Assembly (NCBI RefSeq): GCF_036588685.1
Contig: NC_086380.1
Coordinates: 30,008,001-30,072,000 of the forward strand
Source of the DNA: Mytilus trossulus
Lineage: Eukaryota
Length of the DNA stretch: 64,000 nt
Reading direction: 5' to 3'
Below the pieces are notes generated by a model. That model was not told the origin of the DNA, made no database searches, and saw only the letters and a list, made by a program, of their open reading frames with translations. A program made the translations under genes and the position numbers. Positions 6,662 to 38,498 of this stretch are shown here, piece by piece (position 1 is the stretch's first letter; every line of letters begins with the position of its first letter).

Positions 6662-6818
6662 CTATAAGTAGGAGAAAATTTGGGTCGCTTAAATTTGAAT
6701 ATACAGTTGATTGCTGCAATAAATTATATAAATCAGTAGGCTCCAACAACTCTAGATTTTCGGTACATTGATTTGCGAACTCCTGCCAATCAGTGTATTC
6801 TTCCCTTCCATCTCCCAT
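6662..6818 (-). CDS. STYXL1: Serine/threonine/tyrosine-interacting-like protein 1 (MK-STYX pseudophosphatase), first coding exon; rest of gene probably left of the window
   Basis: MGDGREEY...LELLEPTDLYNLLQQSTVYSNLSDPNFLLLI(D) resembles the human STYXL1 N-terminus ([32 protein letters not shown], from memory). Phase-1 GTAAG donor at 6661. Divergent from MDH2 as in human. Confidence 0.8.
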
Positions 6819-7156
6819 TTTGACCGTTTAGTGTATTTTTACTTTATTCACATGTACAGACGTAGCACGTCAAAAATATACAAATGTTCTTGTGCATAAA
6901 ATATAATCCTACATAACAATCTCAGTTAAGTTCACCAATTGAATGAAATACCAAATAAAAAACAATTTATATTTTCCATCTCTATTTTGACTTCTTATTT
7001 ATAAACAAAAATGTCATCAATTCATCAAAATTATTTTTTATACATTAGTTTGGTCGTCAAGTGCGGATAAATCTTAAAATTTGTGTACGCATGTCACATC
7101 TTTTCATTTCCACTTCCTGTCATTCAGCAAGGACACCGGTTAAAATTTTTATAAAA
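6819..7156. promoter_or_regulatory. Putative bidirectional promoter and 5' UTRs between STYXL1 and MDH2
   Basis: Only 338 bp separate the two divergent ATGs. ETS-like ACTTCCTGT at 7112-7120. Confidence 0.6.
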
Positions 7157-10100
7157 ATGTTTTCAAGGCTAGCAAAACCGAGTACTGTCACATTTATTGT
7201 TAGCAGGTCATTCTGCAAAACTTCACAGGTATAAGTCAAATTGAACGGACGCCAAACAATAGGCGGGAATTAAAACATGTTTAAAAATGCTTATCCTTGA
7301 CAGTTGTGATCAGTTGTCGGTTGATGATGCAAAATTGCCTCATCATCAATTCAAGCCAACTATCCTTGATCGCAACACACGCAACTTGTCTTTCTTAATT
7401 TTAAGTAGAGTATGCAGCATTTAGATGTCTCTTCTTTTGTAAACTTAAAGTGAGACAGTTCCTACCTGATCAGCACTAGAACAGCTGATCCTGAAGGTTA
7501 TTCATATAATTGGTGCATGTATATTTAATTTTTCATTTTTTTAAGATATCAGATATATGGATTCGAAGTTGATAAAAATTGTATGCTCCTGTATAACATC
7601 ATACCAAAATTGTAAATTAAAGTCAAGAAAAGAAATGAAAACTGCAAAAATTTATAGCCAGGGTCTATTAAAAAAATCAAAAAAGGATGTATTAAATATT
7701 TTTATTTATGCTCTAACATCATAATTACATGTACATTGAATCATCCAATTAAGGTTTTGATTCTGGGTTTTGCTTAAATTGAATGACACACTCAAATTAT
7801 CTTCTGTGAACTTGGGTGATAAATTAATTTCTACTTATATATATAATTAGTATTCATAGTAGATTTGCTCATAAAGTGTCCTTTTTACTCTTCAAATATG
7901 GAGGGATGTAGTCCCCCTCTTCCCAAACACTTTTAAATATTATGAGCCTTTGTTTCTGTTTCATTGCCCTGATTTGCACACACAAAAAAATGTTTTTGAT
8001 TAAAGCCAATTATAATAGGGCTCTTCACGGTTAGTTCGGCCATATTGGATAGGGGGCAGATTTTCATAATATAGATGTAAAAAATGGTGTGAAAAATACG
8101 GGAAAACATCATTTAAACAGAGCTGTTGCTTAGAAACACACAGGATTTCCCACATTTTCATACTGTTTCCACCTCCTTCCAAAAAATCTGCCCCCTATCC
8201 AATATGGCCGAACTAACCGTGAAGAGCCCTATTGCAATATTCAATTATAATTTTTTCATATCTAATATATCATTTATATAAAAAAGAACTTTTTGTACCA
8301 TGTTTGTGACTGATACATGTATCAACTAGTTTGATTTATTATCAATTCAGTTTCAGAATATACATCAATAATAATATATAAATCAAATTCATTAATTGAT
8401 ATCTTTCAGGCTTGGCAGTCTCCTAAAGTTGCTGTACTTGGAGCCGGTGGTGGTATTGGTCAACCTTTATCTTTGCTTCTAAAAAATTCAGCAAAAATAG
8501 CAAGTCTGTCATTATATGATATTGCTCATACACCAGGTGTCGCTGCTGATTTAAGTCATATTGATACACGAGCCCATGTCACTGGTCATCTTGGTCCAGC
8601 ATCATTGGAAGCATGTCTGACAGACGCAAATGTTGTACTGATACCAGCTGGTGTTCCAAGAAAACCAGGTAAGTGAAAATAAAACTAAGACTGAAATGGT
8701 ATTGGTACAAATGTATGTTCATAATTCTCTAAGGTATGTTCACAATTTCATTGTGCTCTGGTGACGAGATCAAAACAAAATGATCTCTTGAAAAGAAAGC
8801 AGAAGAGATGTGGTATGATTGCAGTAACATGAAACCACTATCCACAAAAGTCTGCATGTCTGAAAGGATACACAAAAGTGCTTCTAAACATTTACATCTG
8901 AGAAAGTGAACTCTGGTGTCAGTTTTAAGGTTGAAAACTCCCCAATTACACCAAATAAATGTAAGATAAGATAAGGCCTTCAACAAGGTGCCTCGCCTCA
9001 CACCAAACAGCAATTCAAACATAAAAACCAACGGTCTAATTTATATAGAAAACGAGAAACACTTGAAAACCACATCAACAAGTAATGACCACAGACACAG
9101 AACAACATGTTCCTGACTTAGGAGTCGGGACAGGTGCTAACAAATGCAGCAGGTTTAAACGTTTTAACAGGTGCCAACTGAACCATTAATATAACAATAC
9201 AATAGAGGATGACACCCTATAAAATATCAAGCATTAAAATGAATAAACATACTGGTACAAAACATTATTATTTAATGATAATATTCCATTAAAATTACTA
9301 TTGATAATTCATTGTTTAAATGTTACAGGAATGACAAGAGATGATCTGTTCAACACAAATGCTGGAATTGTCAGAGATTTAGTGTCAGCCATTGGAGATT
9401 TCTGTCCAAAAGCAATGATCTGTATCATTACAAACCCGGTTAGTATTTAAATGTTACTTCTCTTTTTACAACATTGACAATAAGTTATATGAATTGAATG
9501 GACTTGTTTGTTATTTGATATTGCAAGCACTTTATTATAGGGATTCAATGACTGTGAATACATAAATACAGCAATTCAAGTTAAAAGTATTTAAACAAAG
9601 TTGTGATCTTTTTATTTCAACTGTAATAAAACAATGAAATTGTCAAAAATAAAGAATAAATATAAAATGAAAAACAACAAAAACAGCAGGATCACTAATA
9701 AGGGGAGAGTATAGATTATTCTCAATTGAAACAACTCTTCTGACTCTTAATAAATCTCACTTGCAGGAAATTTAGTGTGAAGACTTGATATGTTATCAGT
9801 TTTAAATTTTAAGATAGAAGAACTCCAGATATTAATTATATTTATTATATATAAGTCTAAGTCCTCATACATGTTATATATGCATTGATTTATTTGTAAT
9901 ATTTAATTTATCCTTTCTTACCAAGGTTAACTCCACAGTGCCAATAGCCGCAGAGGTTCTAAAGAAGAAAGGAGTATATGATCCAAGACGTCTATTTGGT
10001 GTTACAACATTAGATATAGTTAGATCAAATGCATTTGTAGCAGAAGCTAAGGTTTGAGTTTTGTATTTAACACATGTATATATTTTACACCTTAATGGAA

Positions 10101-12813
10101 TGCACTCATTGAATAAATTTGACAAGATTAATAATTTTTTGGTTTGGGTACAAATAAACTAGAAAGTACAAATTTTCTAAAGGTTCCTGTGCAAACTTTT
10201 TTGAAAAACTACAATTTAAAAAAAAAAGAGAATGAGACAACTGTCAACAAGAGACCAAAATGACAGACATTAACAACTATAGGCTACCGTACGGCCTTCA
10301 ACAATGAACAAAGTCCATACCGCATAGTCAGCTATAAAAGGCCCTGATAAGACAATGTAAAACAATTCAAACAAAAAAACTAACGGCCTTATTTATATAA
10401 GAAAATGAATACAAAACCATTTATCTCCAAAAAAATAAATAAATTCACAGTAGGCAGTGAACAAAGATCAATCCTCATTTGTTGCAGCAAATTTTTTTTT
10501 TTTTATCAGAAGCTCTTGCCTCCATTGAGCAAGGCTTTACTGTCACCTAAGTGGAGGCCTTATACAAAAGGAAAGTCAATATCTGTCCCATTCTATGATT
10601 TGGTAAATAAATTCCTTTTGGAAATAAGTGGCATTTTTTACATGCACTTAATATCTAGGAGCAGCCAAAAGCAAGAGCAAGTCAACGATCTGATCTTCAT
10701 GATGAAAATGCTATACTTTCACTATGGTAATAGTCACATACATGTATGAGTTAATTTAAATTTTCATCTTCTTTGTAGATACTGTAGATACTCTGTTAAT
10801 TAATATGACACACCTTTCTTCAATCAAATATATTTACCATTTATTTTCATTGCAGGAATTGGATGTATCTAAATTAAATGTTCCCGTTATGGGTGGACAT
10901 AGTGGAGTAACAATTATACCTGTCATCTCACAAGCTAACCCCAGTGTTTCGTTTCCACCAGTAAGTATCATTGACACCTGTCTGTCAGCTCACAAGCTAA
11001 CCCCAGTGTTTCATTTCCACCAGTAAGTATCATTGACACCTGTCTGTCAGCTTTAAGTATCATTGACACCTGTCTGTCAGCTTTAAGTATCATTGACACC
11101 TGTCTGTCAGCTCACAAGCTAACCCCAGTGTTTCATTTCCACCAGCAAGTATCATTGACACCTGTCTGTCAGCTCACAAGCTAGCCCCAGTGTTTCATTT
11201 CCACCAGTAAGTATCATTGACACCTGTCTGTCAACTCACAAGCTAACCCCAATTATAATTGTTAGTTTTGCCTGTTGTCAGATTAAAATTACATCATCTC
11301 TAGTCCAAAAAAAATAGATGTTAGGAATATGATTGATCAGTTAAATAAATAATGAGAAACAAATATCATGTCTGGTAGTGCAATGGTAAATACACCCTAT
11401 TGAATCCTATATTTCAACTGAAGTCAATATAATTAGCAGATAACTTCTTTTAGATAACATTCATAATTTACTCATGCACTACATGCATCATTGTATTTCA
11501 TGATTCTTCAAATATAACACTGTTTTTTCAGGAGGAGAGAAAGAAGATTTCAGAGAGAATACAGAATGCCGGAACAGAAGTAGTAGAGGCCAAGGCTGGT
11601 GCTGTAAGTTACTCACAAACATTTTGATGTTGATTGTAAAGCTAACTCTGCAAAACCATTTGGTTGCTTGAGAAATTTATTTGCAACATTTTTTTTGTAA
11701 CTTTGAAATATGTTTTACATTACATATACATAAGATGTTTCTTTTTTGAAAAAAAAATGTTCTTACAATGAAGTTTTAAAATCTCCACACTAGTCTACTC
11801 TTTCCAGTCACTATTTGTCTATTCTGCATTGGAAAAAAAAATACAGCGTACCTGAATTTTGTTTGAAGTGTTTATTGATGATTTTACTTCAGCCTATATA
11901 AGCTTATTGTAATATCACCATGTGATGCCTTGAAAGAATAATTGTCATTAATGACTATACAATCAACTAAAAATTCATATCAATGCACGGTTTATAAGAG
12001 TACTTACACCAACATGATTTCTGAACTTTAGGTCGATATGGATATATGCAAACATTGACTATTTTGCAATATCATATGATTACTTTTTTTCCAGGGATCA
12101 GCAACCTTATCTATGGCCTATGCTGCATCAAGATTTACATTTTCACTGTTAGAAGCTATGGCTGGAGGTGAAGGTCAAGTAGAATGTGCATATGTACAGT
12201 CAGAAGAAACAGATGCTGCTTTCTTCTCAACGCCCCTGTTATTGGGTGTAAGTATAAGAATAAGAAGACGTGATATGATAACTCTACCTGAGACCAAATG
12301 TCATAGAAGTTAGCAATTATAGGTCACCGTACAGATTCATTAATGTGCAAAACCATACCACATAAAACTAAGGAAATTACAAATGTTAAACACTTCAAAC
12401 GAGAAAAATGGCCTGATTTATAACCTTGAAATGATTTTAAATATCTGAAAATAATTAATTTCTTTTTCTGCCGATTTTGAATAAACTGAGGACAAATAAC
12501 ACAAGTATAATAAACATCCAAATTCAGTGTTTTATGAATAGTACTTTTACTATTAAAGACTAAAAGCTAATTTTAATTATTCCATACTTTTTTCTCCATT
12601 TAGGTCAATTTTGATGTGTTTATCTTTGTCCTACATGACAAAATTTTTTATTTAAAAATTCTATTTTATTCTTTTTTTCTTCAGAAAAATGGTGTTGAAA
12701 AGAATCTTGGAAGAGGAAAACTCATTGACTACGAAATGCAGCTCTTAGATGCAGCTATGCCTGAACTTAAGAAAAACATTCAAGCTGGAGTTGACTTTGT
12801 AAACAAATCATAG
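7157..12813 (+). CDS. MDH2: Malate dehydrogenase, mitochondrial (8 coding exons, 341 aa)
   Basis: Exons 7157-7228, 8410-8668, 9329-9438, 9926-10051, 10856-10960, 11532-11603, 12095-12247, 12685-12813. All GT-AG and phase-consistent (1026 nt). Presequence-like [16 protein letters not shown]; motifs [47 protein letters not shown]. Confidence 0.97.
8014..8233. mobile_element. MITE with ~50-bp terminal inverted repeats (MDH2 intron 1)
   Basis: AATAGGGCTCTTCACGGTTAGTTCGGCCATATTGGATAGGGGGCAGATTTT and its reverse complement ending at 8233; GGG...CCC core flanked by TA. Confidence 0.8.
10921..11250 (+). repeat. 62-bp tandem repeat built from the MDH2 exon 5 3' end plus splice donor
   Basis: CTCACAAGCT units start at 10927, 10989, 11111, 11173 and 11235; two 30-bp truncated units at 11051 and 11081. 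Confidence 0.95.
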
Positions 12814-19246: not shown

Positions 19247-22200
19247 TTAGACCCTGTGTCAACTGAGCTGATGCAAAGGTTTCCTATTCTATTTTAAGTC
19301 CTTGATAATGCAGCATATGACTAGCACACACCCCGGCACCCGTCCATTTTCATCAAAGAACTACTCATTAAAATAGTAATTGCTAAAATTGAATAAAAGA
19401 GATTTAAAAAAGAAAAAAAAAATACAGATGCCCATAATGAAATTTGTCTCCGTCTCATCTTAGTTTACAGTCTGTGTTTGTATTTCTTAATAGTTGATTC
19501 CCTATAGAAATATCAGGGATATTGATACAGCAGCTGTCTTACTAGCCAAAATTGCTAGGAAAATCTAGTTTCTGCAGTATATTTGGCTTTTGCACATATA
19601 ATAAATTTATAGTCTGACGGGCATCACCGTGTATTACTGAGACTACTCATGATAACACAGTGTTATAGTAGTCTCAGTGTATTTTAATAAAATTAAAATA
19701 ATTTAACAAATATGCTACCCTATATCCTTTTTATTTTCATAAAACTACTGATATTGAATCAATAAGATCAGGAGAATTTCAAGTTCTTAAAAAATATAAA
19801 TGAACAAAATCTTTACAATACTTGATAGAGGTTACTATGAACTTATCATTGAACATGACCTTGACCTCTGGCATTTTGCTTTTCAAACAAAATGTAAGCA
19901 AAATTTAGTCTAAACACTTTTTCTAAATACTTTTAGGGTTTATTTGATTAAATTTCTAAGAAAATTTAATAAAAAAATGACCTACGGTCAAAGTCAAGCT
20001 GAAGGTCATGAATAACCTTTGCCCTTGAGGTCAACTTTCAGGTCATTGAATGCACATTGACAACATGTTCGAAGTGTTTTTGAAGTATACTGATATTTCT
20101 ATTTGAAGATAACTTCAAATGCAAAATATTCTTAGCTTTAAAAGTTTAAACGTGTTTGTTTTGAGAAAAATCATTTGAAATGTTGGATTAAAGGCTGTTT
20201 GGAATTTCCTGATGTTTTGTCAACGGAGGACACATATTCGCCGTTGTTAACTTACACATCTATTTAAAACCAAATAACTGCAGCTTTAAACAATATTGCT
20301 CAAATAAATTTCATTATCTAGATGAATAGCAGACATTTGAAAGGTGTAAAAAATGAAATTTAGGGCAATCAGTCAAAGAATTACTAAAGAAATACTTCTT
20401 TGAAATCGTTTTTTTCATTCAGGAAATTGGCTGAAAATCGTTGTCCCTTTTTCGGTCCTTTTCGATAAGTGCCGAAATTTGGTCTCATTTTCAAAAATAA
20501 TCATATTTGTTATAAAAAATATAATTTACCTGCATAAGTTTCTTCAATTTCAAGCATCCTTTGAAGTTTTTACACCTCAAAATCATAAAGCGGCGAAATT
20601 ATGTCCACGGCGAATATGAGCGCCCCACTCAGGCTACTTCAAAAAAACTTATAAAAGCCGGGAAAGAAAAAAAAGGGGGAACAATGCCTCAAGTACCTGC
20701 ATTTTATTGAATCGCCTATAAAAAAAACCTTGGCGAATGCTCTGGTCATAGGGACAATGATTGAAACAGTGCCTTATGTTACCGATTTCTGATAACAGTT
20801 AATATCATAATAGTATAGTTTAAGCTCCTCATAGAATGAAACCAGATCAGCATGTGTCTGTCCCCTACCTAAAGGTCTCCCAAATACAGCTGACCTTTCA
20901 AAATGTTTACCCGTCTTGCAAAGCCAAATCATGACATACGGTCAATTTTACAGAAATCATTTTCTATATCATCACAGGTAATTATTTCACAGATCAACCC
21001 GTTCGCAGGCTTTGTGAAAGTCAAAGCCTATTGTCAAAGGTATCGACCGTAGTCGTAGACTGTGACAGTGTAAATTGTGTATTGAAAATGTATTGAAAAG
21101 TATTGAAAATAATTTTGGCTTGTGGCTCACTGCAAAAGAGTCGCCCCTATAGTCATGCTCCAATGAATCCCTATAAAATAATCAACTATTTTTTCCAGAT
21201 AAGGAGGACACAAATTTATGGAAAATCATTTTAAATGGTCATGATGGTATGGCATACTAGTCCAAATAATTATGATGTTTGGTTTTCAACATATATTTCA
21301 TAGTTGTAGCATGCTGAAAAATAATGGTACGGTTTCGGCAAATTCGAAATATGGGACATGAAAGTGTCCGATCCAGCCTCATATAGCGAGGCTGCATTAC
21401 GGCAGGGGGTATGGGGGCCGCTCAAGGCCTCCAGAAGCTCTGGGATTTATAGCGTTATAATCCTGCATTCTAAGTGTTTCATGGCACTAAAAAATGTTTC
21501 CCAACAGCAGCATTTTTTACAAGACCATTTGATAAAAAATGAATGTCTGTGTCTTGCGGGTTTTGCAGTTTGTTTTCTATTTTTGTGTCCTTAACATAGC
21601 AAGATTGGCGAATGAGAACAATACTGCCATACTATTATCTCGCAACAAATCATTGGGCAAAATTCATGATTTACAAGTGATTTCTGTCAGTTTATTAATT
21701 ATAAGATCTTAAAATATTATTATTTTTAAAATAAAACAATCAAAGTACGGCTAGCAACTATTGAGCTATAGTGAATAGAAAAATGAATGAGGATCGGGAA
21801 TGTGTAAAAAACTACAACAATCCTCACACACTGCATGCATGGGATAAGCTGCAGCTGGTCCGGTAGTCCTATAATATAAGACTTCTGAGATTCATATCAT
21901 TTACATTTAACTTTTTTTATCGGATATTTAAAAAAAAAATCAATGTTGAACCCATCTTCGCTAGCCAAGGGTTATGTGTTGAACCCGAATTCGGGTTAAA
22001 CCATGTGATTGATAGTAAATAAAATACATAATAAAAAAAGGTTGAGTGCAAATGATCAGTCAGAGATATAACTCTATAGGGTTATTACAGAAAATAACTT
22101 ACATGTGTTATTACAGATACTTTTCTTTAAATTTTCTAAATCTGTAATAACATATGTTTGTTATTTGTAAAATTATTTAATCTATAGTGGACTCTAGGGA

Positions 22201-25440: not shown

Positions 25441-28402
25441 TAACACACAAAAGAACTTAAATTGAAAACAATACAAGAAAAACAAAGCCAGAGGTTCCTG
25501 ACTAGAGAGAGTCGCAAAATTGCGATAGGGTTTTAAACATGTTAAATGTTTCAAAGTGAACGTTAAATACAAGCACTTCAGTCGACACTAGGAGTCATCT
25601 TGGCCTGGTAGAATATAAATATTTAATGTGATCATGCAGCCACTATCAAGATGAAGAACTGAAATAAATAACTGTGTTCTTGATAATTTGTATCTTGTTT
25701 AAATGTACTGTGTACGATTTTGTCATATAAATATATGCATATTTACTAGAGAGCCTGTCGCAATTACCGTGATTTTTTGGACAACGGTTGTCTTGCAAGA
25801 AGGACCTGCTTACACTTCTGGAGCACCTGTAGTCGCACCAGTTTTTTTTAAGGGGTCAGTCCGTGTTTCTAATTTGATTTTGGCTTTCACTGTTGAATGG
25901 TGTTGTTTTTCTACATAAATCAGTGTACACCATTCCAACAGTTTTTTTTTAATTATTGTAATAAACAATCATGATGGAAAGAGTAAATCAGCGGTCTCAC
26001 AAAAACAGCCTCCCGGTGAAGTATAGATATGTGAAATAATAGTGATTTATCTTCTGGTTTATGTTACAGAAGGGCACTTAAAGAAAGGCACAGTGCAGGA
26101 AGTGGTATTAAGACTTAGAGATCTCACGAATCCCGACAGAGTCCCGATACAGGTTATATCCCCTTTTGCAATACGGTATCTTACATTTTAAAAAAGGCCC
26201 TCACCTCTGATTTCAATTGACATTATGCTTGAAATATTTGCAACTGTACGTTAGGAAAATAAACAATCAATCAACTGAATTTGAACTTGACTTGTGGTGG
26301 TTTTATTAAAAAAAACCGAGTGAAATCATTACATACATCTGTTACCTGCAAACCTAAGGATATTGCATTGTGCAAACAATAATATTACTATTTCCAATGT
26401 TTTAAATGCTATGAGGTTTATCCCTATCTACATCATCTGGAATCAAAAATTGCAACAATTATTCAAAAGAAAAACTGCTGGCTGTTTCAACCTTGAAAAT
26501 GTTTCCAAACTGATGCGTTAAACTTAAAGAACTAGCAACATCATGTGAAGATTTTCCGAATTTATTAGCTGTCGATTGTTGCTGGCTTTAGCATTCTTCA
26601 GATTATCCATCAGTTTCAGTTTATTCAGTCTGTGTCAGATTGGCGCATGAACCATAACAACACCCAACATTATCTGCAACAGCATCTTAAACAATGCCGA
26701 TTAATTAATCATTAATTGCTAATCAATACTGATTACGGTATTTTGGTTACGTACATTGACATGCTCAGTACTTTTAATGTTGAAAGACGTTTTTTTTCAT
26801 TCTTTAAGAAAACAGCCTTCAAGATAAATGTAAAACATTTATTGTATGGAAGTTGTATGCTATTTAAGCTTTTTTTTTTTAAATATGTTGATTTTTTTTT
26901 GGTACCAACCGTACCGTGTGCTACGCCAGTGTATTTGTTCCACCTAACAGAAGTTCCAGTGGTAACTTTATTATAAACAATGTCATAATACCTGTACCTG
27001 ATGGAACAAATATTCTATACTATTTATTCTGTTAGGTACATCTATTGTAACATTTATTCCTACATGGAAGTAATATTCCTGAATATTTTTCCATTTGGAT
27101 CTTACATTTTGAAGGAACTTCTATTCCGTGACATGGCAAGGCTATTTTAATTTGTCACTAATTGCAGGGGATTTCCCCCATAAAAGAGGGTCTGGATTTG
27201 GGAGGTGTCTGTTATTCTGTAAACATTTAATTTTAACCCCTTTTTTCTCTAATCTTAAAAAAATTAGCCCATTTTTTCTCTAATCTTAATTTTTTTGCCC
27301 GTTATTCTCTAATCTTCATTTTTTAAGGGCATTATTCTTTAATCATATAACCCCATCCAAACCCTCATGAAAGCTCCTAAATGGAAATTTTATAAGAGCA
27401 ATTTTGTCTACAATTTTAAACTAAACAGTTTATTTTACATTTGTAGACAAAATGCATGAAGAAGGCCACCTTGAACTTTAAAGCCATCTTGCAAGCTAAA
27501 CCCCCATGTGCATTTTGAAAAGTAAGCAGGTATGATATGGTCCTCAGACATAAATTAGGGTGAGGGTGAAATCAAATGCTGATTAACTTATGTTGTCAGA
27601 AATTCTGAAAAATAAAAATAAATTCTGGCATTCTCACATGCCGATCACATGATCACATGATCGAGATGATTGACAGCTGCTAGAAACAGTTTATGTTGTT
27701 GGAGGAAAGTGGTATGAACCCAAATGGACACGTCTTACTTTTATACACTCTTTAGGAGCATATAATACAAAACAGAAACTCTTCTGGACATTCCGAAATA
27801 AATAAAGTTTTCTGAGTTATCTCCCTTAATACATTGTAATGCAAATTTTTAAAAACAATCATACATTACAGTGACCTATAAATTTTAATTTCTGTGTCAT
27901 TTTGGTCTCTTGTGGAGAGTTGTCTCATTGACAATCATACCACGTCTTCTTTATTATATATATTTTTGAAACTTTATCTAACGGTTTAATCTCATTTTCT
28001 TTAATGATAAAGTTAAAGGAAAAAACAACATCAACTATTAATGATAAACATCGCGATCATCTTTATAATCATGGTTTATAAATTTGTAATATTATAGTTT
28101 GGTAAAAGCACATACCCCACATCCAAATCATCAGAGGGAAATTTAGGGGGAGGGAGCCTGTGTCCTCTCTTATAAAGAAAAACTTTGATTGAATGTTTAT
28201 GCAATCACTGAAGCATGACTGTAGCAGACATTGGGTAATCATGATCAGTTATCGTAATCAGATGTAATCGATTTCATTTTGCAGTGTAATCCTATGCAAT
28301 CAGTAATCATGCCATTTCTAATTACAAGTTATTGTAATGTAATCGATTACATTGCAAAAAACAGGTGTTATCATTATTACTTTGAGATAACTTTAAGATT
28401 AA

Positions 28403-28982
28403 AGGAGTAGGTCCGGTAAGGACCGATTTTGGCCTCAAATTTCAGGTTCATTTGACAAAAGATTTTAACCACTTTTTAAACACTTAAGTGTCTATTTCAT
28501 TTGAATCAAATTGTTTATGTGAAAGATTTTAACTGATTTAGTCATTAAAAACGATCCGATTCAAACTCAAATATGAAAAATCAACCAAATATGCCAAAAA
28601 ATGTAACTTTTCGGATGGTTTTTGTCAAAAACGAAAGTGGCCGCATCCGTGTTCATCCTCAACCTTTAAATATGTTATGTATTATCATAAAATACAACTT
28701 TCATTTCAATATTAAGGATGAACACGAATGCAGCCACTTTCGTTTTACACGAAAACCGTCTAAAATTTAACTTAAATGCTAGAATTTTGAAGAATTCAGT
28801 AATTTAGCATGACTTTAAGGTGCCATTACCCGATATATGTTCATTGTATAGTCAAAAATAGCCCATATTTATGTAGCAGAAGCACTCTACTGTTCAATAA
28901 ATAATTAAAAGTTTACATTTTATCAATTTTGTAAAACTGCTATATTTTGAGGCCAAAAAGGGCTCTTACCGGACCTACTCCT
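28403..28982 (+). mobile_element. Kolobok-type non-autonomous DNA transposon
   Basis: TIR AGGAGTAGGTCCGGTAAG / CTTACCGGACCTACTCCT; flanked by TTAA (left) and TTAT (right); AG...CT termini. Confidence 0.75.
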
Positions 28983-29585
28983 TTATGTGATTACTTGCTG
29001 ATTACAAATCCTGTATACATCAGTACATATTATTTGCTGATTACAAATCCTGTATACTTCTTGCTAATTACAAATCTTGTATATTTATTTGAAAATAGTT
29101 TTTGATAGACAATATGAAAATAAGAAAATCTAAAGCATAAATGAAAAATCATAAAATTAGTAGGACTTTGTTTAATGTGATAAATTGTATCATCTATATA
29201 TCAAGTTTTGTATAATTAAGTGTTTTATTTTGTTAACAGTTTACTAAAGGAATTTACCTTTCCAATGTTTCGTTGTGAGATTGGGCTCTTATGATACAAG
29301 AATATGCCTTGAAAGCATTTGTTGTTCCTTGATTGAACATTTCTCATGTTTCTGATACTAACTCCAATTTCATATAATTTTGCCCAATATTTTGTCACTG
29401 TAGCCCCCCTCTTAGGATCATCCTTTGATCATCACTTCTCATCAATGTATTTGAATCTAAGCCAATACATCATATAGACTTATAAGAGCCATGAAAATTA
29501 AAGACTCTCAGTATTCATGTTAATAGCTGATAGCCACCATGATCACTTCTCATTAGTGTTACACATATGTATTTAAATCTTTCAG

Positions 29586-32500
29586 GTGAACAATAATCAC
29601 CAACATCCCCATCGTCACCATCCAGTACACCATCATCAACATCCTGTTCACCATTCACCACATAAAGTGACAGTACTGGGAGCAGGTGGAGCTGTAGCTC
29701 AACCATTGTCTCTTCTGCTGAAAAGTTCCTCCAAAGTTGGCAGGCTATGTTTGTACGATATAGTTCACTCACCAGGTGTCGCTGCAGACTTAAGTCACAT
29801 AGATACAAGAACTGTTGTTACTGGTTACCTAGGCACTGAACAGCTGGAGCCCTGTCTGACAAAATCTGATGTTGTACTAATAACAGCTGGAATTCCTAGA
29901 AAACCAGGTAATTAAATGATTAACAAATGGGACAATCGCCAAAATCGCCAAAACACTACACATAAAACTAAGAGTAGAAACTTAGTAAAAAGGCTAGTGA
30001 GGAAATCAGTTAGTGTGACGAGATTCTGCTCTACAAGTCACAGTACTAGTCTTGTCAGGAAAAGTATATATCTGGCAATATAAAATCATATTCTGTGGTA
30101 ATGAATAAGGATCAGAGGACATGATTATGATTTATAGCTTGCCTTATGGTTTGGATGCTATGAAGTTATGATAATGACCTTGAGATAGAAGATAAAGATA
30201 TATTGGATTTATAATTCATTGAAACAGCATCCATTGTATACAGTGAAAAAAAAATACCAGGAGACAAACTGCAGCCTTCAACTACATGTACTACTACATG
30301 CATGGGTGTTTAATGACCTTGACTACCCATGAAATTTCACACAATCAGCAGTCCTCAACAATGAATTAATACTATGTATGTCAAGCTTTTAGTTATCCAG
30401 ATTTCACATCAGTTACACCAGGAGATGTGGTACAATTGTTAATGAGACATGCATCAAAGTCTACAGGCAATTATGTAAAAAAAGGGAAAAGATACCAAAG
30501 AGATATACTCAATTTCAAGTGGAAAACACCCTGAAAGTACCACATGGTAAAAATTGCAAAAGGATCACAAGAACAAACAACAGTATAAGAAAGAAAACAT
30601 AGAAAACTAAAGACTGAGACACAGGAACCTACCAAAATTTGGTGGTGATTTCAGGTGCTCCATAGTGGTAAGAATATGTCATGATGCTCTTTTAGTCTAA
30701 TTAATTAGGTCTTTTAGTAGCTAAATGTAAGTTCAAATGCTTCCTTGTTGTCCCCTTTTCTTTGGAATGATGATCCATTATTTAATTCAAAATTAAGATT
30801 TTTAGTTTTGTAAGTTTGTTGCCTTACAGGGAGACCTACACTTAGACTTAAACTAGAGGCTCTAAAGAGCCTGTGTCGCACACCTTGGTCTATGTGAATA
30901 TTAAACAAAGGACACAGATGGATTCATGACAAAATTGCATTTTGGTGATGGTGATGTGTTTGTACATCTTACTTTACTGAACATTTTTGCTGCTTACAAT
31001 TATCTCTATCTATAATGAACTTGGCCCAGTAGTTTCAGTGGAAGATGTTAGTAAAAATTTACAAATTTTATGAAAATTGTTAAAAAGTTACTATAAAGGA
31101 CAATAACTCCTTAAGGGGTTGATTGACCATTTTGTTCATGTTCACTTATTTTTAGGTCTTACTTTGCTGTACATTATTGCTGTTTACAGTGTATCTCTAT
31201 CTATAATAATATTCAAGATAATAACAAAAAACGGAAAATGTCCATAAAATTACCAATTCAGGTGCAGCAACCTAGCAACAGGTTGTCCGATCAATCTGTA
31301 AATTTCAGAGCAGATGGATCTTGACATGATAAACAAGTAAACCCCAGTCAGATTTGCTCTAAATGCTTTGGTCTTTTTTGTACATAAATTAAACCAAGTT
31401 TTAATTTAATTTTAAATCGAAATTGACAATTCAAATTGTCTGACCTGTTGAGTAATTAAATTATGAAGCCAGTTGGTATGGAATTTTTATTTGTTTATAA
31501 TAATAGTTTGGAGCTTGTGATTAAATGCCAGGTGTGAATTAAAAACACAGGTAAAGAGATTAGCAATCATTAGCCAATAGCTCCCCGAGGCATTAATACA
31601 GTTATTAGGAGGGCCCTCAGGATTAAAACACTTTATTGGAGTGGCAGTTTAATTACAAGAAGTTGATAACAAATCAAAAATATGTTCAAAATGGCGATTT
31701 TGAAAGTCGATCTCAACGAAATGACCGAAATTATTACTGTTGAAAAATAAAATTTGACCTAAATCCCAATTAAAAGTTTAGGACATTATAGTTTCAGTTT
31801 AGGACATGACTGGCAAATATGACTGTTTCCGGACCCTTGCTTTGAGTTATAAGCCACAAACTGCATTTTACCCCTATGTTCTACTTTTAGCCGTGGCTGC
31901 CATCTTGGTCGGATCAGAGACATATATACACATATATGTCTCTGGTTGGATGTCCGGGTCAACAGACACATTTTTTAAACTAAATATCCCAAAGATGATT
32001 GTGGCTAAGTTTGGATTAATTTGGCCCAGTAGTTTGAGATGAGAAGATTTTGTAAAAGATTACTAAGGTTACGAAAAATGTTTTAAAATTGACTATAAAG
32101 GGCAATAACTCCTAAAGTGGTCAACTAATCATTTCGGTCATGTTGACTTATTTGTAGATCTTACTATGCTGAACATTATTGCTGTTTACAGTTTATCTCT
32201 ATCTATAATAGTATTCAAGATAATAACCAAAAACAGCAAAATTTCCTTAAAATGACCAAAATCAGGGGCAGCAACCAAACAAAGGGTTGTCTGATTCATC
32301 TGTAAATTTCAGGGCAGATAGATCTAAATGCTTTGGTTTTAGAGTAATAAGCCAAAACTGCATTTTACCCCATGTTCTATTTTAAGCTGTGACGGCCATC
32401 TTAGTTGTATGGCTGGGTCACTGGACACATTTTTTCAAATAGATACCCCAAAGATGATTGTGGCCAAGTTTGGATTAATTTGGCCCAGTAGTTTCAGAGG

Positions 32501-35500
32501 AGAAGATTTTTGCAACAGATTACTAAGATTTATGAAAAATTGTTAAAAATTTACTATTAAGGGCAATAACTCCTAAAGGGGTCAACTGACCATTTCGGTC
32601 ATGTTGACTTATTTGTAAATCTTACTTTGCTGAACATTATTGCTGTTAACAGTTTATCTCTATCTATAATAATATTCCAGATAATAACCAAAAACAGCAA
32701 AATTTCCTTAAAATTACCAATTTAGGGCAGCAATCAAACAACGGGTTGACAGATTCATCTGAAAATTTCAGGGCATTTAAATCTTGACCTGATAAACAAT
32801 ATACCCCTATGTCAGATTTGCTCTAAATGCTTTGATTTTTGAGTTATAAGCCAAAAACTGCATTTTACCCCTATGTTCTATTTTTAGCCATGGCGGCCAT
32901 CTTGGTTAGTTGGCAAGGTCACTGGACACATTTTTTTTTAAACTAGATACCCCAATGATGATTGTGGCCAAGTTTGGTTTAATTTGGCCAAGTAGTTTCA
33001 GAGGAGAAGATTGTTGTAAAAGTTAATGACGCCGGACCCCAGACGGTGGACGCAAAGTGATGAAAAAAGCTCACTTGGCCCTATGGGCCCTATGGGCCAG
33101 GTGAGCTAAAAAATAAACGTTTTTTTCTTTAAAATAGGTATGACTGAGGATGAACAGTTCAACACAAATGCAGGAATTGTCAAAGATTTAGTGTCTGCCT
33201 GTGCAGAGTTCTGTCCAAAAGCAATGATCTGTATCATTACCAACCCTGTAAGTACAATGAATGTGAAACATGATGTAAGTCAAAAGCTGAAAACAGGCAT
33301 TTAATGTAGTACATGTACAATGTGCTAATATCAGCATGTACCAAAGTTAATTTTAGATAGGAATAAACATGATAAAAGAGATGTTGGAGTATTCAATAAT
33401 GAAATATCTACCTTAAAACACAATAAAACTAAACAAGACATGTATAGGACAACATATGTTCTTCAATGATGTCAAGTTTTTAAAAATGGTTACATTTTAG
33501 ATTGATTGATTGTTGGTTGCTTTACGCCGCATTAGCACAACAAGGCTATATCACAGCGATTCTATTCTCGACAATTTGTACATAACATAGGTATATCTAC
33601 AGGTCTTATCCCAAATTCTTAGAGGTCTTAGAGTAATGTAACTAAAATTGAAAAATAAAGCAAAACACACAATGATTTCTTAATGACAGCATTTTACTAA
33701 AATGCTATTATGTCAAAAAGATTTATGCTATATATTAAATAAATTAATATTAAAAGATAATCTTGCATGTTTTCAACTCTTTAGGTAAATTCAACATTGC
33801 CACTTGCTGCTGAAGTTTTGAAGAAGAAGGGTGTATTTGATGAAAGACGCTTGTTTGGAATGACAGCATTAAACTTATCAAGAGCAAAAACATTTGTGGC
33901 AGATGCAGTGGTAATGACTTTTTAGCTTATCTAAAACTTCTGTCTTTTTCTTTAATATAAATGTTTAAAAAGTGTCAAAATAGGTGCAATTTGGGTACCC
34001 TCATATTTTAAGTAATTTGCAGTGAACCTAGTTTGGAAGACATATTTTTACTTGAACAGTTTTGGTCACACTATTAGCTTTTGAAAAGTAATTAATCAAA
34101 AGAGTTGATATATTTTAAATATTTGTATAGGTTTATAATTCTTTATTTGAATTTTCAATATTGAGATTAATGATTATTATGAGGAGAAATAAATTCATAT
34201 TCAAACATAAGCTTAATTTTTAGGGTTGCAATGTTGCTAAGCTAGTGGTACCAGTTGTGGGAGGAAACAGTGGAATTACTATTGTACCTCTAATATCACA
34301 AAGTATACCTCCTGTAGATTTATCACAGGTAAGTACCAGTCATGTCTCCAAGTTAGTGGTACCAGTTGTTGGAGGGAATAGTGGTACATGTATATCTGTT
34401 GTACCTCTTGTATCACAAAGTTTACCTCCTTTCTGTTAAACACAGGTAAGCACCAGTCATTGTTGTCACTCAACATACCTGATTAATATCTATGGCTACT
34501 AGCAAGGTTGAAACACGGATCTAAAGAAATAAAAATTTGTAAGGGTTCCGCGGAACCCAGTGTCTCGCCTACTTTTGTTGTAAATCACAGGCTCAACAAC
34601 AATGAGGGAAAAAAATCAATAAAAATATTCCTCTTGATACTATCTTTTGATTGTAAGAAGCTTCTGTCTAAGTTTGGTAAAAATCTAGGATAGTTAATTA
34701 ATCTTATAAATGTTTTGAAAATTTTAACTGCAGACTGTATGTAATATTAACTGGAAGAAAATTATAGACCATTTAAAAGTAAAATACAGAAAAAATGGAG
34801 TTATACTTTTACAAAATTTACTTCTGGATACTATCTTATAATAGTCCAAGTTTGGTACAAACCCAGGATAGTTAAAGAAAGTTTTTAAAATTTAACAACT
34901 TTAACCACAGAGTGAATGTAATGTTTCCCTGCAGAAAAACTAAGTCCATTTAAAAGTAAAATACGGAAAAAATGGATTTATTTTTTTACAAAATTTACTT
35001 CTGGATACTATCTTATGATCATAAACAAGCTTCTGTCCAAGTTTGGTACAAACCAAGGATAGTTTAAGAAAGTTATTAAAATTCTAAAAACTTTAACCAC
35101 AGAGTGAATAAAAATTTTCCTCACAGAAAAAACTAAGTCCATTTATAAGTAAAATATGGAAAAAATAGAATTTTATTTTTACAAAATTTACTTCTGGATA
35201 CCATCTTATGATCATACACTAGCTTCTGTCCGAGTTTGGTATGAATCCAGTATAGTTTAAGAAAGTTATTAAAATTTCAAAAACTTAAACCACAGAGTGA
35301 ATATTTGTGGACGACTACGCCGACGGAAAGTAGGATCGCTTAGTCTCGTTTTTTCGACTAAAGTCGAAGGCTCAACAAAAACTGTACGGATGGAGTGTGA
35401 TTGAATTTATTATTTTTTTGTTCAAAAGCCCCTGCAAATCCAAGTTGGTAGTTTATTTTATAATATAGTGTTTTAATTCTTTAAAGAACATTGATGACAT

Positions 35501-38498
35501 ATAGGGATGTTATTTATGTTCTAAATAGGATAAGATCGTTCACCTATATGGTATGGATTGCACTTACTCATGTTCACAAGTGGACCTCATTGTCCAAGTG
35601 GTATTTTAGTTAAAACACATGAAAATAAAGGAATCCACAGTATTTGTCCATATACCTTAAGACATTTTATTCCCTCATAACGGTTCATTAGGAGATTTCT
35701 GGATTTTCAAAAAACTTCTTCTTTCCTGGTATCTAGATTGTTTTTTCTTGTTAGTATAAATGTATACTTTGTTTAAACAATGAACACTCAATTTAATAAC
35801 TTAGCATTGTTTCCCTTTTACCCAGTGTTCTTTAACCATTTTTTATGCCAGGGGAAAGGTAAATATTTAAGGAAACTCCATACATAGAATCTACCATGGA
35901 AGCTACCAGTCATCATATTTGCTGTGTATAATAAATTATAGAACTTTGGCCATTTTTTATTTAGGAAGAAAGAAAGAAAATAATACAGAAACTACAGAAT
36001 GCGGATACAGAGATTATTGAGACAAAAGCTTCAACTGTAAGTGATCTTTAGTAAACTTGTACAAGAAGCACCTTACAATAAACCTTGTGGATACTGTTAA
36101 AAGTTGATCTGAGCTTGAGTTGTTACAATTTTTTTTTTTACAATTACACATCATAAATCTTGATTGTAGAAGAATGCTGTCTGATGCAGTCCAGCACTTG
36201 TTTTATTCAGGGTAGTTATTAAGAAATAATTGGTGCAAGCTATACTTTATTGTAGTTTTAACATAGGTAGGCATTATATTCATGATTATTTTTGCCCGAG
36301 TGATAATGAGGGCTAATATAACACAAATATAATGACTACCCATATTAAAACTACAATAAAGTATAGCTTACATCAATTAAGGACAATTAAGGTAATTTAT
36401 ATGTCTGATGTGTGTAAGTGTAGAATGTTTGTGTAGGCTCTTCCATGAATCTCCTTTTTTTGTTTGCAAACAAGCAAAAGACTGGCAATGTGATTTTTCA
36501 GAGGGATGAGTTTTGAACAGCCAGAATGAACGATTGTCTTATTTAAGTCAAATATGTCAATTTCAACTGCAACACATAACAGTCATAATAAATGACTTGG
36601 TAAACAACATGTGCATCATTTTAAAGGTTGGAAGTGTTTTAAGTAAAATGCATATCAATTTGATAAAAATTCATTACTCTGCAGCAGTCAATATAAGCAT
36701 GTGCCAACAAATATTATTGGATTTAGAGCATGGGTTTATTCACAAAGTGAATGAAGCACATCATATTAGAATGAATGATAATTCAGTCAAACAATTTTTT
36801 TCATGCCAATTTTCAAGATGAAAAACTTGTAGATTTACAAAAAACATCATTAACATCTCGAAATTAACTGGTTGCATTAAGGGGTTTCACAACCCTTTGA
36901 AAATGTAAAAATAGAAGAACAGTATTATATTCTAAAAGATAAGACCTGCTTAAGTGATCTTTTTTTTAAATTTGAAAAATGTGTTTTATTTTTAGCTCAA
37001 ACACAAATTATATTTTTAACAGGGTTCAGCAACTTTGTCTATGGCACATGCAGCCTCCAAGTTCACACTATCTTTGCTAGCAGCAATAGATGGAGAGGAA
37101 GGACAAGTAGAGAATGCCTATGTAAAATCAGAGGAGACCACCTCACCTTACTTGGCAACACCTCTGTTACTAGGAGTAAGTATATGATAATGTAAAGTCA
37201 GAGGAGACAACCTCACCTTACCTGGCAACGCCACTGTTACTAGGAGTTAGTATAGGAGAATGTAAAGTCAGAGGAGACCACCTCACCTTACTTGGCAACA
37301 CCTCTGTTACTAGGAGTAAGTATATGATAATGTAAAGTCAGAGGAGACAACCTCACCTTACCTGGCAACGCCACTGTTACTAGGAGTTAGTATAGGAGAA
37401 TGTAAAGTCAGAGGAGACCACCTCACCTTACTTGGCAACACCTCTGTTACTAGGAGTAAGTATATGATAATGTAAAGTCAGAGGAGACAACCTCACCTTA
37501 CCTGGCAACGCCACTGTTACTAGGAGTTAGTATAGGAGAATGTAAAGTCAGAGGAGACCACCTCACCTTACTTGGCAACACCTCTGTTACTAGGAGTAAG
37601 TATATGATAATGTAAAGTCAGAGGAGACAACCTCACCTTACCTGGCAACGCCACTGTTACTAGGAGTTAGTATAGGAGAATGTAAAGTCAGAGGAGACCA
37701 CCTCACCTTACTTGGCAACACCTCTGTTACTAGGAGTAAGTATATGATAATGTAAAGTCAGAGGAGACAACCTCACCTTACCTGGCAACGCCACTGTTAC
37801 TAGGAGTTAGTATAGGAGAATGTAAAATCAGAGGAGACCACCTCACCTTACTTGGCAACACCTCTGTTACTAGGAGTAAGTATATGATAATGTAAAGTCA
37901 GATGAAACAAAAGCAGTTTAAACATTTAAATATGTGGTTAACCTGTACATATAAAATCCAGGAACATTGGTATTCAATGAATAATAATGAATCCTCAGTA
38001 GCAGAAAAAAGCTGCTATCATGACAACAAAATGAAGAAAGTATTAAGGTTTTATAAAGTTGCAGTAGTCAAAAACCGCTTACATGCCAAAGCTAGTGTTA
38101 CTGAAAGTTAGTATAGGGGAATATACAGTATATATGGAGACAAAAACAGCTATCATGACAATACCTAGGAGTAGGTATACAGGGATTTTAAATCTGAGAA
38201 AGCAACAGAAACAAGAACATGTAAAATAATCAAATAAATAAACCAGTTGTTAGACCAAATAAAAACTTTGTTTCATATATAAACTTAAGTGTGATTTTAT
38301 TTGGAAAAATTCCTGTAATAAAGCTTTCATGCATAGGGCAAATTTAAAGCAGAAATGATTTATTTTCAGGATGAAGGAATAGTAAAGAATCTTGGTATGT
38401 CTAGTTTGGATGAGTCTGAGACAGAACTGGTGAAAGCAGCCCTACCTGAATTAAGCAGACATATTCAAAAAGGAATAGATTATGCTAATAAGTCATAA
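29586..38498 (+). CDS. MDH2-like tandem paralog with His-rich N-terminal insert and substituted active site (predicted pseudoenzyme); exons 2-8, first exon not firmly located (candidate 27506-27529, MCILKSKQ)
   Basis: Exons 29586-29907, 33138-33247, 33785-33910, 34224-34328, 35965-36036, 37023-37175, 38370-38498. Exons 3-8 match MDH2 in length and phase, all GT-AG, no stops or frameshifts. Motifs [43 protein letters not shown]; ends GIDYANKS*. Confidence 0.92.
30851..33113. mobile_element. Helentron-associated non-autonomous element (HINE/pearl-like) with ~460-bp internal tandem units and a nested insertion (~31371-31837)
   Basis: Terminal stem-loop AGGCTCTAAAGAGCCT; other end AGCTCACTTGGCCC..GGGCCAGGTGAGCT followed by an A-run; GACG-type microsatellite remnant ~33028-33052; units begin GGGCAATAACTCC at ~32100 and 32561. 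Confidence 0.75.
34528..35381. mobile_element. Second HINE-like element with ~180-190-bp tandem core repeats
   Basis: Stem-loop GGGTTCCGCGGAACCC near one end and TTCGACTAAAGTCGAA near the other; ACAAAATTTACTTCTGGATAC at 34811, 34988 and 35181. Confidence 0.7.
36227..36379. repeat. Long intronic inverted repeat (hairpin) of probable transposon origin
   Basis: TAATTGGTGCAAGCTATACTTTATTGTAGTTTTAA pairs with TTAAAACTACAATAAAGTATAGCTTACATCAATTA. Confidence 0.75.
37121..37902 (+). repeat. 70-bp tandem array with A/B alternation (140-bp higher-order unit) built from the paralog exon 7 3' end plus donor
   Basis: 11 monomers (6 A with GTAAGT, 5 B with GTTAGT) at exact 70-bp spacing from 37121, plus a partial unit. 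Confidence 0.97.

Follow-up and report, generated by a model that had tools for sequence, protein, structure and literature searches.

Downstream of its gene for mitochondrial malate dehydrogenase (MDH2), a mussel keeps a second gene of the same type in which the catalytic residues are replaced. Both genes lie in a stretch of 64,000 nucleotides from Mytilus trossulus (assembly GCF_036588685.1, contig NC_086380.1, positions 30,008,001 to 30,072,000 of the forward strand), which we call the window and number from its first letter. A preliminary description, made from the letters of the window, had placed the second gene at 29586-38498 and had proposed that it encodes a selected non-catalytic protein rather than a decaying pseudogene. 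This proposal is supported by intact orthologs, by the ratio of non-synonymous to synonymous divergence (omega), by a site-class test and by exon-only coverage in RNA-like data. We estimate, with a probability of roughly 0.7, that the gene is functional and encodes a catalytically inactive, mitochondria-targeted MDH2 paralog, i.e. a pseudoenzyme.

Gene structure of the paralog

Motif scans and a tblastx comparison of the first gene with the window revealed two MDH2-type genes on the plus strand, with seven colinear exon pairs, and a genome search found only these two. The first gene is the parent, a canonical MDH2. Its stop codon lies 16.8 kb from exon 2 of the paralog, close to the 17 kb described before. 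The features that had been described as intact could be read directly at the exon boundaries: all introns of the paralog are GT-AG, the reading frame is open to the TAA stop, and exons 3-8 measure 110, 126, 105, 72, 153 and 129 nt in both genes. The interval 29586-38498 was exact for exons 2-8, from the first base of exon 2 through the stop codon, but exon 1 had been missed. We found it by tblastn with M. edulis MDH2, and the start of the gene thus lies 8.7 kb upstream of exon 2. The presequence that it encodes is 50% identical to that of MDH2, and the junction (...SQ CAG/GT) is the same in both genes. The joined product of 363 amino acids is identical to the RefSeq protein P0381 of M. trossulus, named 'malate dehydrogenase, mitochondrial-like'. 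Coordinates are collected in Table 1.

Replacement of active-site residues

Over residues 52-360 the paralog aligned without gaps to the mitochondrial MDH of human (4wle) and of pig (1mld). The altered motifs reported earlier (GGNSG, TALNLSR, GMTEDEQF, GAGGAVA and QNADTE) were all present, and the ungapped structure alignment confirmed the residue correspondence that had been assigned to them. In E. coli numbering, the replacements are R87E, D150N, H177N, G210D, G11A and G13A, and the residues kept are G7, G10, D34, R81, N119, R153 and M227. The motifs reported as retained were also found (LYDI, TNPVN and DLSHI, together with PRKPG, which holds R81). All the numbered positions, replaced or kept, are invariant in an alignment of 25 animal MDH2 sequences.

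The replacements are not a peculiarity of one species. E87, N177, D210 and A11 are common to all four Mytilus orthologs described below, and N150 is present in all three whose models include exon 4. In the mobile loop, D89E and L90Q are fixed together with Glu87 (4/4 orthologs). The substrate arginines R81 and R153 and Asn119 are retained in every ortholog. In the dinucleotide-binding part (GxxGGxG), G7, G10 and Asp34 are kept, and G11A and G13A/S are found across the orthologs. Altogether, 93 of the 115 MDH2-invariant columns are unchanged in all four orthologs. The 22 changed columns are grouped in the glycine loop, one strand, the mobile loop (RDDL to EDEQ) and the TLDIVR, GGHSG and NAGTEVV segments.

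In enzymes of the LDH/MDH type, the His-Asp pair serves as a proton relay, and R87 polarises the carbonyl of the substrate. With Asn, Asn and Glu at positions 177, 150 and 87, the paralog is therefore not expected to have 2-hydroxyacid dehydrogenase activity. The protein is still recognised as a member of the family. P0381 matched the Pfam domains PF00056 (Ldh_1_N, 134 bits) and PF02866 (Ldh_1_C, 107 bits), both above the gathering score, and single exons also matched LDH/MDH domains. The protein scored 381 bits against the equivalog model TIGR01772, whose cut-off is 273 bits, which explains the name 'malate dehydrogenase' in the databases.

Orthologs and phylogeny

Exon-wise and full-length protein searches identified orthologs in three further species: M. 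edulis (P0380, 400 amino acids; older truncated models P0251 and P0383), M. californianus (P0379, 355 amino acids) and M. coruscus (P0260, 313 amino acids, a model that skips exon 4). All of them carry exon 1, the His/Pro-rich tract and the dead residues. The other top matches, including those from other bivalves and two mytilid-like transcripts (P0261 and P0263), were normal MDH2, and none of the top matches was a paralog from outside Mytilus. A metagenome scan with P0381 gave no match. When protein representatives were searched with exon 2, the matches were MDH2 fragments only; clustering at 50% leaves the paralog without a representative of its own. The preliminary description had spoken of a bivalve pseudo-MDH. 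Intact orthologs with dead residues in four Mytilus species bear this out for the genus, but the word bivalve was too broad, as orthologs were found only in Mytilus.

In a maximum-likelihood tree, the four orthologs formed a clade (support 100/100) that was sister to Mytilus MDH2 (96/89), and both were placed within a group containing P0261 and P0263 (97/93). The stem of the paralog clade was 0.61 long, compared with 0.17 for MDH2. In M. coruscus, exon 4, which is in phase, is absent from the models of both the paralog (P0260) and MDH2 (P0262). An annotation artefact is the probable cause, because MDH2 would otherwise lose D150 and R153.

Age of the duplication and selective constraint

Between the paralog and MDH2, non-synonymous divergence (dN) was 0.24 and synonymous divergence (dS) 1.3 (NG86) to 2.1 (maximum likelihood); 53% of the fourfold sites differed. 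Therefore, the duplication is old relative to the radiation of Mytilus. Neutral drift since then would, on the paralog branch alone, have pushed dN towards dS, and pairwise omega against MDH2 was 0.11-0.18. Constraint was assessed by this ratio, by a comparison of site classes and by counts of codon positions.

Variation among the four orthologs affected 6 of the 115 MDH2-invariant columns and 43 of the 196 others (Fisher p = 4.5e-5). The variation postdates the loss of the catalytic residues, and the MDH fold is thus still constrained. Contigs of four organisms yielded 13 listed cross-species differences in exons, a subset picked by read support and not by codon position. Eleven of them fell on third positions (P = 2e-4) and eight were synonymous, with 73% expected to be non-synonymous (P = 0.009 for five or fewer non-synonymous). 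Approximately 3.7% of random substitutions in the coding sequence of the paralog would be nonsense, which gives P = 3e-4 of finding none over a neutral tree length of 0.2. We found no disabling lesion (stop, frameshift or lost splice site) in the window copy or in the orthologs, and the only indels among orthologs were in-frame repeat units. These results argue for purifying selection acting after the catalytic residues had been lost. The signs of decay named in the preliminary description, dN/dS near 1 and lesions of the frame in orthologs, were thus not seen: omega is low at a dS above 1, third-position changes are in excess, MDH2-invariant columns are avoided, and the frame is open in four species.

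Exon 3 differs from the other exons. Here dS between the paralogs was 0.33 (33138-33247 compared with 9329-9438), while it exceeded 1.1 in every other exon. This suggests past gene conversion; exon 3 is probably an old conversion tract, in which the EDEQ loop at the 5' end was left unconverted. In M. californianus and M. coruscus, exon 3 has the MDH2-like SAIGDFC.

Transcription

The expression data come from sequencing runs presumed to be RNA. In each of 24 runs, which come from 12 studies and 4 organisms, 9-14% of the words of the 9.3-kb gene occur, approximately its exonic share. Contigs of four runs, one for each of 4 organisms, were aligned to 28400-34340 (5941 letters, exons 2-5); exons 6-8 were left outside, partly to avoid the repeat at 37120-37910. 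Exon 2 was covered at a depth of 3-45 in the four runs, and the bins of exons 4 and 5 at approximately 4-176. In the unique bins of the intron, depth was 0 in all four runs at 29992-30389, and 0, 0, 1.2 and 0 at 33574-33772. Exon 3 was not counted, because it is partly cross-covered by MDH2 mRNA at the 88% threshold. A contig of 426 nt aligned to 29583-29905 and carried unaligned overhangs of 52 and 51 nt at the ends of exon 2, as in spliced mRNA.

The preliminary description had taken absence of spliced transcripts as an argument against a maintained gene. Exon-only coverage in four runs and the overhanging contig speak for such transcripts, but no exon-exon joint was found among the joints listed. 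The case for spliced transcripts is good but not final. A two-dimensional electrophoresis paper on gill listed only generic mitochondrial MDH spots.

Predicted structure and pairing

An AlphaFold2 model built on an alignment of 29 sequences, the modelling that had been suggested earlier, predicted a normal MDH fold, with a mean predicted local distance difference test (pLDDT) of 81 and a template-modelling (TM) score of 0.95 to pig mitochondrial MDH (1mld). Residues 1-46, i.e. the presequence and the His tract, were of low confidence; the His/Pro tract was predicted to be disordered (pLDDT <50). A heterodimer of the paralog with M. edulis MDH2 scored 0.94, and the best of 3 controls 0.01. Of solved complexes, 51 of 78 reach the mark set for this score, and of mismatched pairs 2 of 108. 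At least 98% of the contacts were the same between runs, with a partner pLDDT of at least 93.

Interpretation and alternative explanations

We propose that MDH2 was duplicated in tandem in the lineage that led to Mytilus and that the paralog is the product. On the stem branch, it would have lost the proton relay of His and Asp (H177N, D150N) as well as the arginine of the loop (R87E) and gained an acidic residue at G210, changes that would turn the dicarboxylate pocket from basic to acidic. A disordered His/Pro-rich tail would have been gained directly behind the presequence. Since then, selection appears to have preserved the frame, the splice sites, the presequence, the MDH fold and the dimer interface. 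The protein would be imported into the matrix and form an MDH-type dimer with itself and/or with MDH2. It may act by binding and not by catalysis, as a scaffold or a regulatory subunit, possibly still binding NAD(H), and the His-rich tail might add the binding of metal or of a partner. Three versions are compatible with our data, namely a scaffold or ligand binder that forms homodimers, a protein that pairs with MDH2 in heterodimers, and a role centred on the His-rich tail.

Several results weigh against this reading. The replacements G11A and G13A/S make NAD binding uncertain. Residues 261-270, which adjoin the pocket and G210D, were modelled at low confidence. Since MDH homodimers are among the solved structures, the pass of the heterodimer shows likeness to them and not pairing in the cell; it probably reflects the memory of the model and carries little weight. 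The interface was not significantly better conserved than the remainder (35 of 47 residues, 74%, compared with 168 of 265, 63%, identical to MDH2; p = 0.18). That the runs are RNA is a guess, and abundant repeats of intron 2 filled the table of joints, so that no exon-exon joint appeared in it. Finally, the protein of M. trossulus differs from that of M. edulis by 5.5% in the paralog and by 0.9% in MDH2, so that the paralog evolves approximately 6 times faster, and constraint on it, as the comparison shows, is clearly relaxed relative to MDH2.

This rapid evolution is what would be expected of a transcribed paralog that is becoming a pseudogene under relaxed selection and whose residual intactness owes something to occasional conversion from MDH2. 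The signs of conversion in exon 3, the low contig depths and the unstable exon-junction repeats in introns 5 and 7, extra copies of which are included in the M. edulis models, fit such a course. Against it, homogenisation cannot have been recent, as dS exceeds 1 outside exon 3, and conversion would have restored the catalytic residues too, which has not happened. Four species lack stops and frameshifts and have in-frame indels only; the exon of the presequence is conserved, and both the avoidance of MDH2-invariant columns and the third-position excess point to continued selection. We therefore regard decay as improbable. An artefact of assembly or annotation in a single genome has practically no chance of explaining the dead residues. 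Some older models (P0251, P0260 and P0383) are truncated or skip an exon, yet we found no support for it there, and the same substitutions recur in independent assemblies of four species, in Logan contigs from many runs and in the RNA-like contigs aligned to the window.

Persisting constraint on the fold would also fit a protein that is still an enzyme, of altered chemistry or substrate, whose remodelled pocket binds a ligand other than a dicarboxylate and which works with NAD(H) or by another mechanism. The pocket has changed in a concerted way and not at scattered sites, and these changes are fixed in each of the four species; R81, R153 and N119 are kept beside E87, N150, N177 and D210, and most NAD-contact motifs remain (D34, TNPVN, SMA). 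However, His and Asp have both become Asn, a residue unable to pass a proton on, and two of the glycines in the dinucleotide loop are replaced; the alignment shows no candidate general base in place of His. To our knowledge, every characterised oxidoreductase of the LDH/MDH superfamily uses the His-Asp pair. An altered enzyme is thus unlikely in our judgement, and we prefer the reading of a selected pseudoenzyme.

Within the pseudoenzyme reading, one particular version goes further. The paralog could be a Mytilus-specific regulatory subunit of the tricarboxylic acid (TCA) cycle that forms a heterodimer with MDH2 in the matrix, the His-rich tail tuning or anchoring MDH2 through protonation or metal. 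We consider this unlikely. If true, pH, metal or redox state would be linked to the flux of malate/oxaloacetate whenever intertidal life switches between aerobic and anaerobic conditions, and a catalytic/regulatory pair like that of IDH3 would have evolved anew in one animal genus.

Dead enzyme paralogs are a known kind. In the literature searched, we met no report of a mitochondrial MDH2 that is catalytically dead, whether from mussels or from other animals, in line with the earlier remark that no bivalve pseudo-MDH was known; searches on the accessions of the paralog and on links to Mytilus sperm, gonad or proteomes found nothing. The gene offers a clean case for asking what the fold of a TCA-cycle dehydrogenase is kept for without catalysis, with the active parent adjoining, an origin dated within one genus, four orthologs and defined changes of the pocket. 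It is also an annotation trap. Because the protein exceeds the equivalog cut-off and is named malate dehydrogenase in RefSeq and UniProt, counts of gene families, allozyme or thermal-adaptation studies and metabolic models of Mytilus would include it as a second mitochondrial MDH.

Comparison with known systems

Compared with its parent MDH2 (pig 1MLD, human 2DFD/4WLE), the paralog has the same eight exons with equal lengths of exons 3-8, a similar presequence and fold, and 63-65% amino acid identity without gaps over 312 residues. It differs in the replacements R87E, D150N, H177N, G210D, G11A and G13A/S and in the His/Pro-rich N-terminal tail.

The beta and gamma subunits of IDH3 are non-catalytic paralogs of a mitochondrial TCA-cycle dehydrogenase that form heterodimers with the catalytic subunit and regulate it. 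They are a model for the paralog as a modulator of MDH2, but their fold is different, they are ancient and universal in eukaryotes, and their regulation was shown by experiment. The Omega-crystallin of scallops is an inactive lens protein derived from ALDH1, and hence also a bivalve example of an enzyme paralog that was kept without catalysis. Unlike the mussel paralog, which keeps its mitochondrial presequence, it is cytosolic and lens-specific, and it has a different fold.

Proteins of the MDH fold in architectural roles provide precedents by analogy. In plastids, an NAD-MDH of the mitochondrial/glyoxysomal type is a subunit of the Ycf2-FtsHi/FtsH12 import motor (8xku) and of the BAM1-LSF1-MDH complex (8j5d), in both without a catalytic part, and both PDB entries were among the top fold and sequence matches of the paralog. 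This moonlighting role, in which the fold serves as a structural subunit, is cited in PMC8042743. The plant protein is fully active, whereas the mussel paralog is a separate gene without the catalytic residues. In radial spoke 3 of cilia, MDH1B and MDH1 pair to form a structural strut (bioRxiv 10.1101/2025.05.19.654877). MDH1B, too, is an MDH paralog that has diverged and carries additional N-terminal sequence, and it forms a heterodimer with the canonical enzyme in an architectural role. In contrast to the mussel paralog, which is predicted to be mitochondrial from its presequence, MDH1B is of the cytosolic MDH1 type, ancient, widespread and axonemal, with a globular N-terminal domain; the mussel paralog is not known to belong to a partner complex.

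Elsewhere in the genome, an open exon of 367 amino acids (L001:722-1825, G000:C2:69523500-69526000) matches Ldh_1_N, lacks the glycine loop and resembles MDH1B. A further LDH/MDH exon lies at G000:C3:26177587-26177757. Exon 1 of MDH2 (7157-7228) lies beside a putative head-to-head pair of STYXL1 and MDH2 (6662-7228). STYXL1 and MDH1/MDH1B are radial-spoke-3 proteins in mouse (10.1101/2025.05.19.654877); this is probably a coincidence.

Repeats at exon ends and minor observations

Table 1. Exons and repeats of the two MDH2-type genes, in window coordinates.
Feature	Position	Strand	Description
MDH2 (parent gene)	7157-12813	+	canonical, 8 exons, every catalytic residue present
MDH2 exons 1-4	7157-7228, 8410-8668, 9329-9438, 9926-10051	+	boundaries read from sequence
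MDH2 exons 5-8	10856-10960, 11532-11603, 12095-12247, 12685-12813	+	boundaries read from sequence
MDH2 exon 5 minisatellite	10920-11251		62 nt x 5.4
Paralog exon 1	20903-20977	+	ATG, 25-amino acid MDH2-like mitochondrial presequence, phase 0, donor CAG/GTAATT
Paralog exon 2	29586-29907	+	His/Pro-rich insert, altered glycine loop GAGGAVA, LYDI, DLSHI, PRKPG (R81 kept); Pfam Ldh_1_N E=1e-18
His/Pro-rich tract	29598-29663	+	not in MDH2; built on a 21-nt repeat (29609-29654)
Paralog exon 3	33138-33247	+	mobile loop GMTEDEQF (R87E, D89E, L90Q); remainder almost identical to MDH2
Paralog exon 4	33785-33910	+	TALNLSR (D150N; R153 kept)
Paralog exon 5	34224-34328	+	GGNSG (H177N)
Paralog exon 5 minisatellite	34239-34460		117 nt x 1.9
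Degenerate intronic second copy of exon 5 and donor	34335-34460	+	in-frame TAA at 34437-34439; non-coding in M. trossulus genome
Paralog exon 6	35965-36036	+	QNADTE (G210D)
Paralog exon 7	37023-37175	+	GSATLSMA helix, dimer interface
Paralog exon 7 minisatellite	37120-37910	+	70 nt x 11.3; last 54 nt of exon 7 and donor
Paralog exon 8	38370-38498	+	ends with TAA stop

Each of the three minisatellites consists of the 3' end of an exon and its splice donor, with the GTAAGT donor repeated in every copy. That of paralog exon 7 has a 140-nt higher-order unit with 99% identity, and the full-length frame was obtained only from the first donor. A second GGNSG at 34371 lies inside the degenerate copy of exon 5. 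In M. edulis, the exon 5 repeat is in frame and annotated as coding; it adds 37 amino acids to P0380 and is present in three copies in P0383.

The copy number of the His/Pro tract also varies, with one unit (7 amino acids) less in M. californianus and M. coruscus. In a HMMER alignment, this tract was paired with the artificial His-tag present in PDB 4wle. We also considered that the His-rich tract might indicate secretion or a role in the byssus but rejected this, as exon 1 lacks a hydrophobic signal core and resembles the MDH2 presequence. RNA-like contigs covered two intervals, 30788-33175 in intron 2 of the paralog and 28400-28996, where summed depth ranged from 1e4 to 8e5 and internal joints were numerous. 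This suggests a repeat family of very high abundance that is apparently transcribed.

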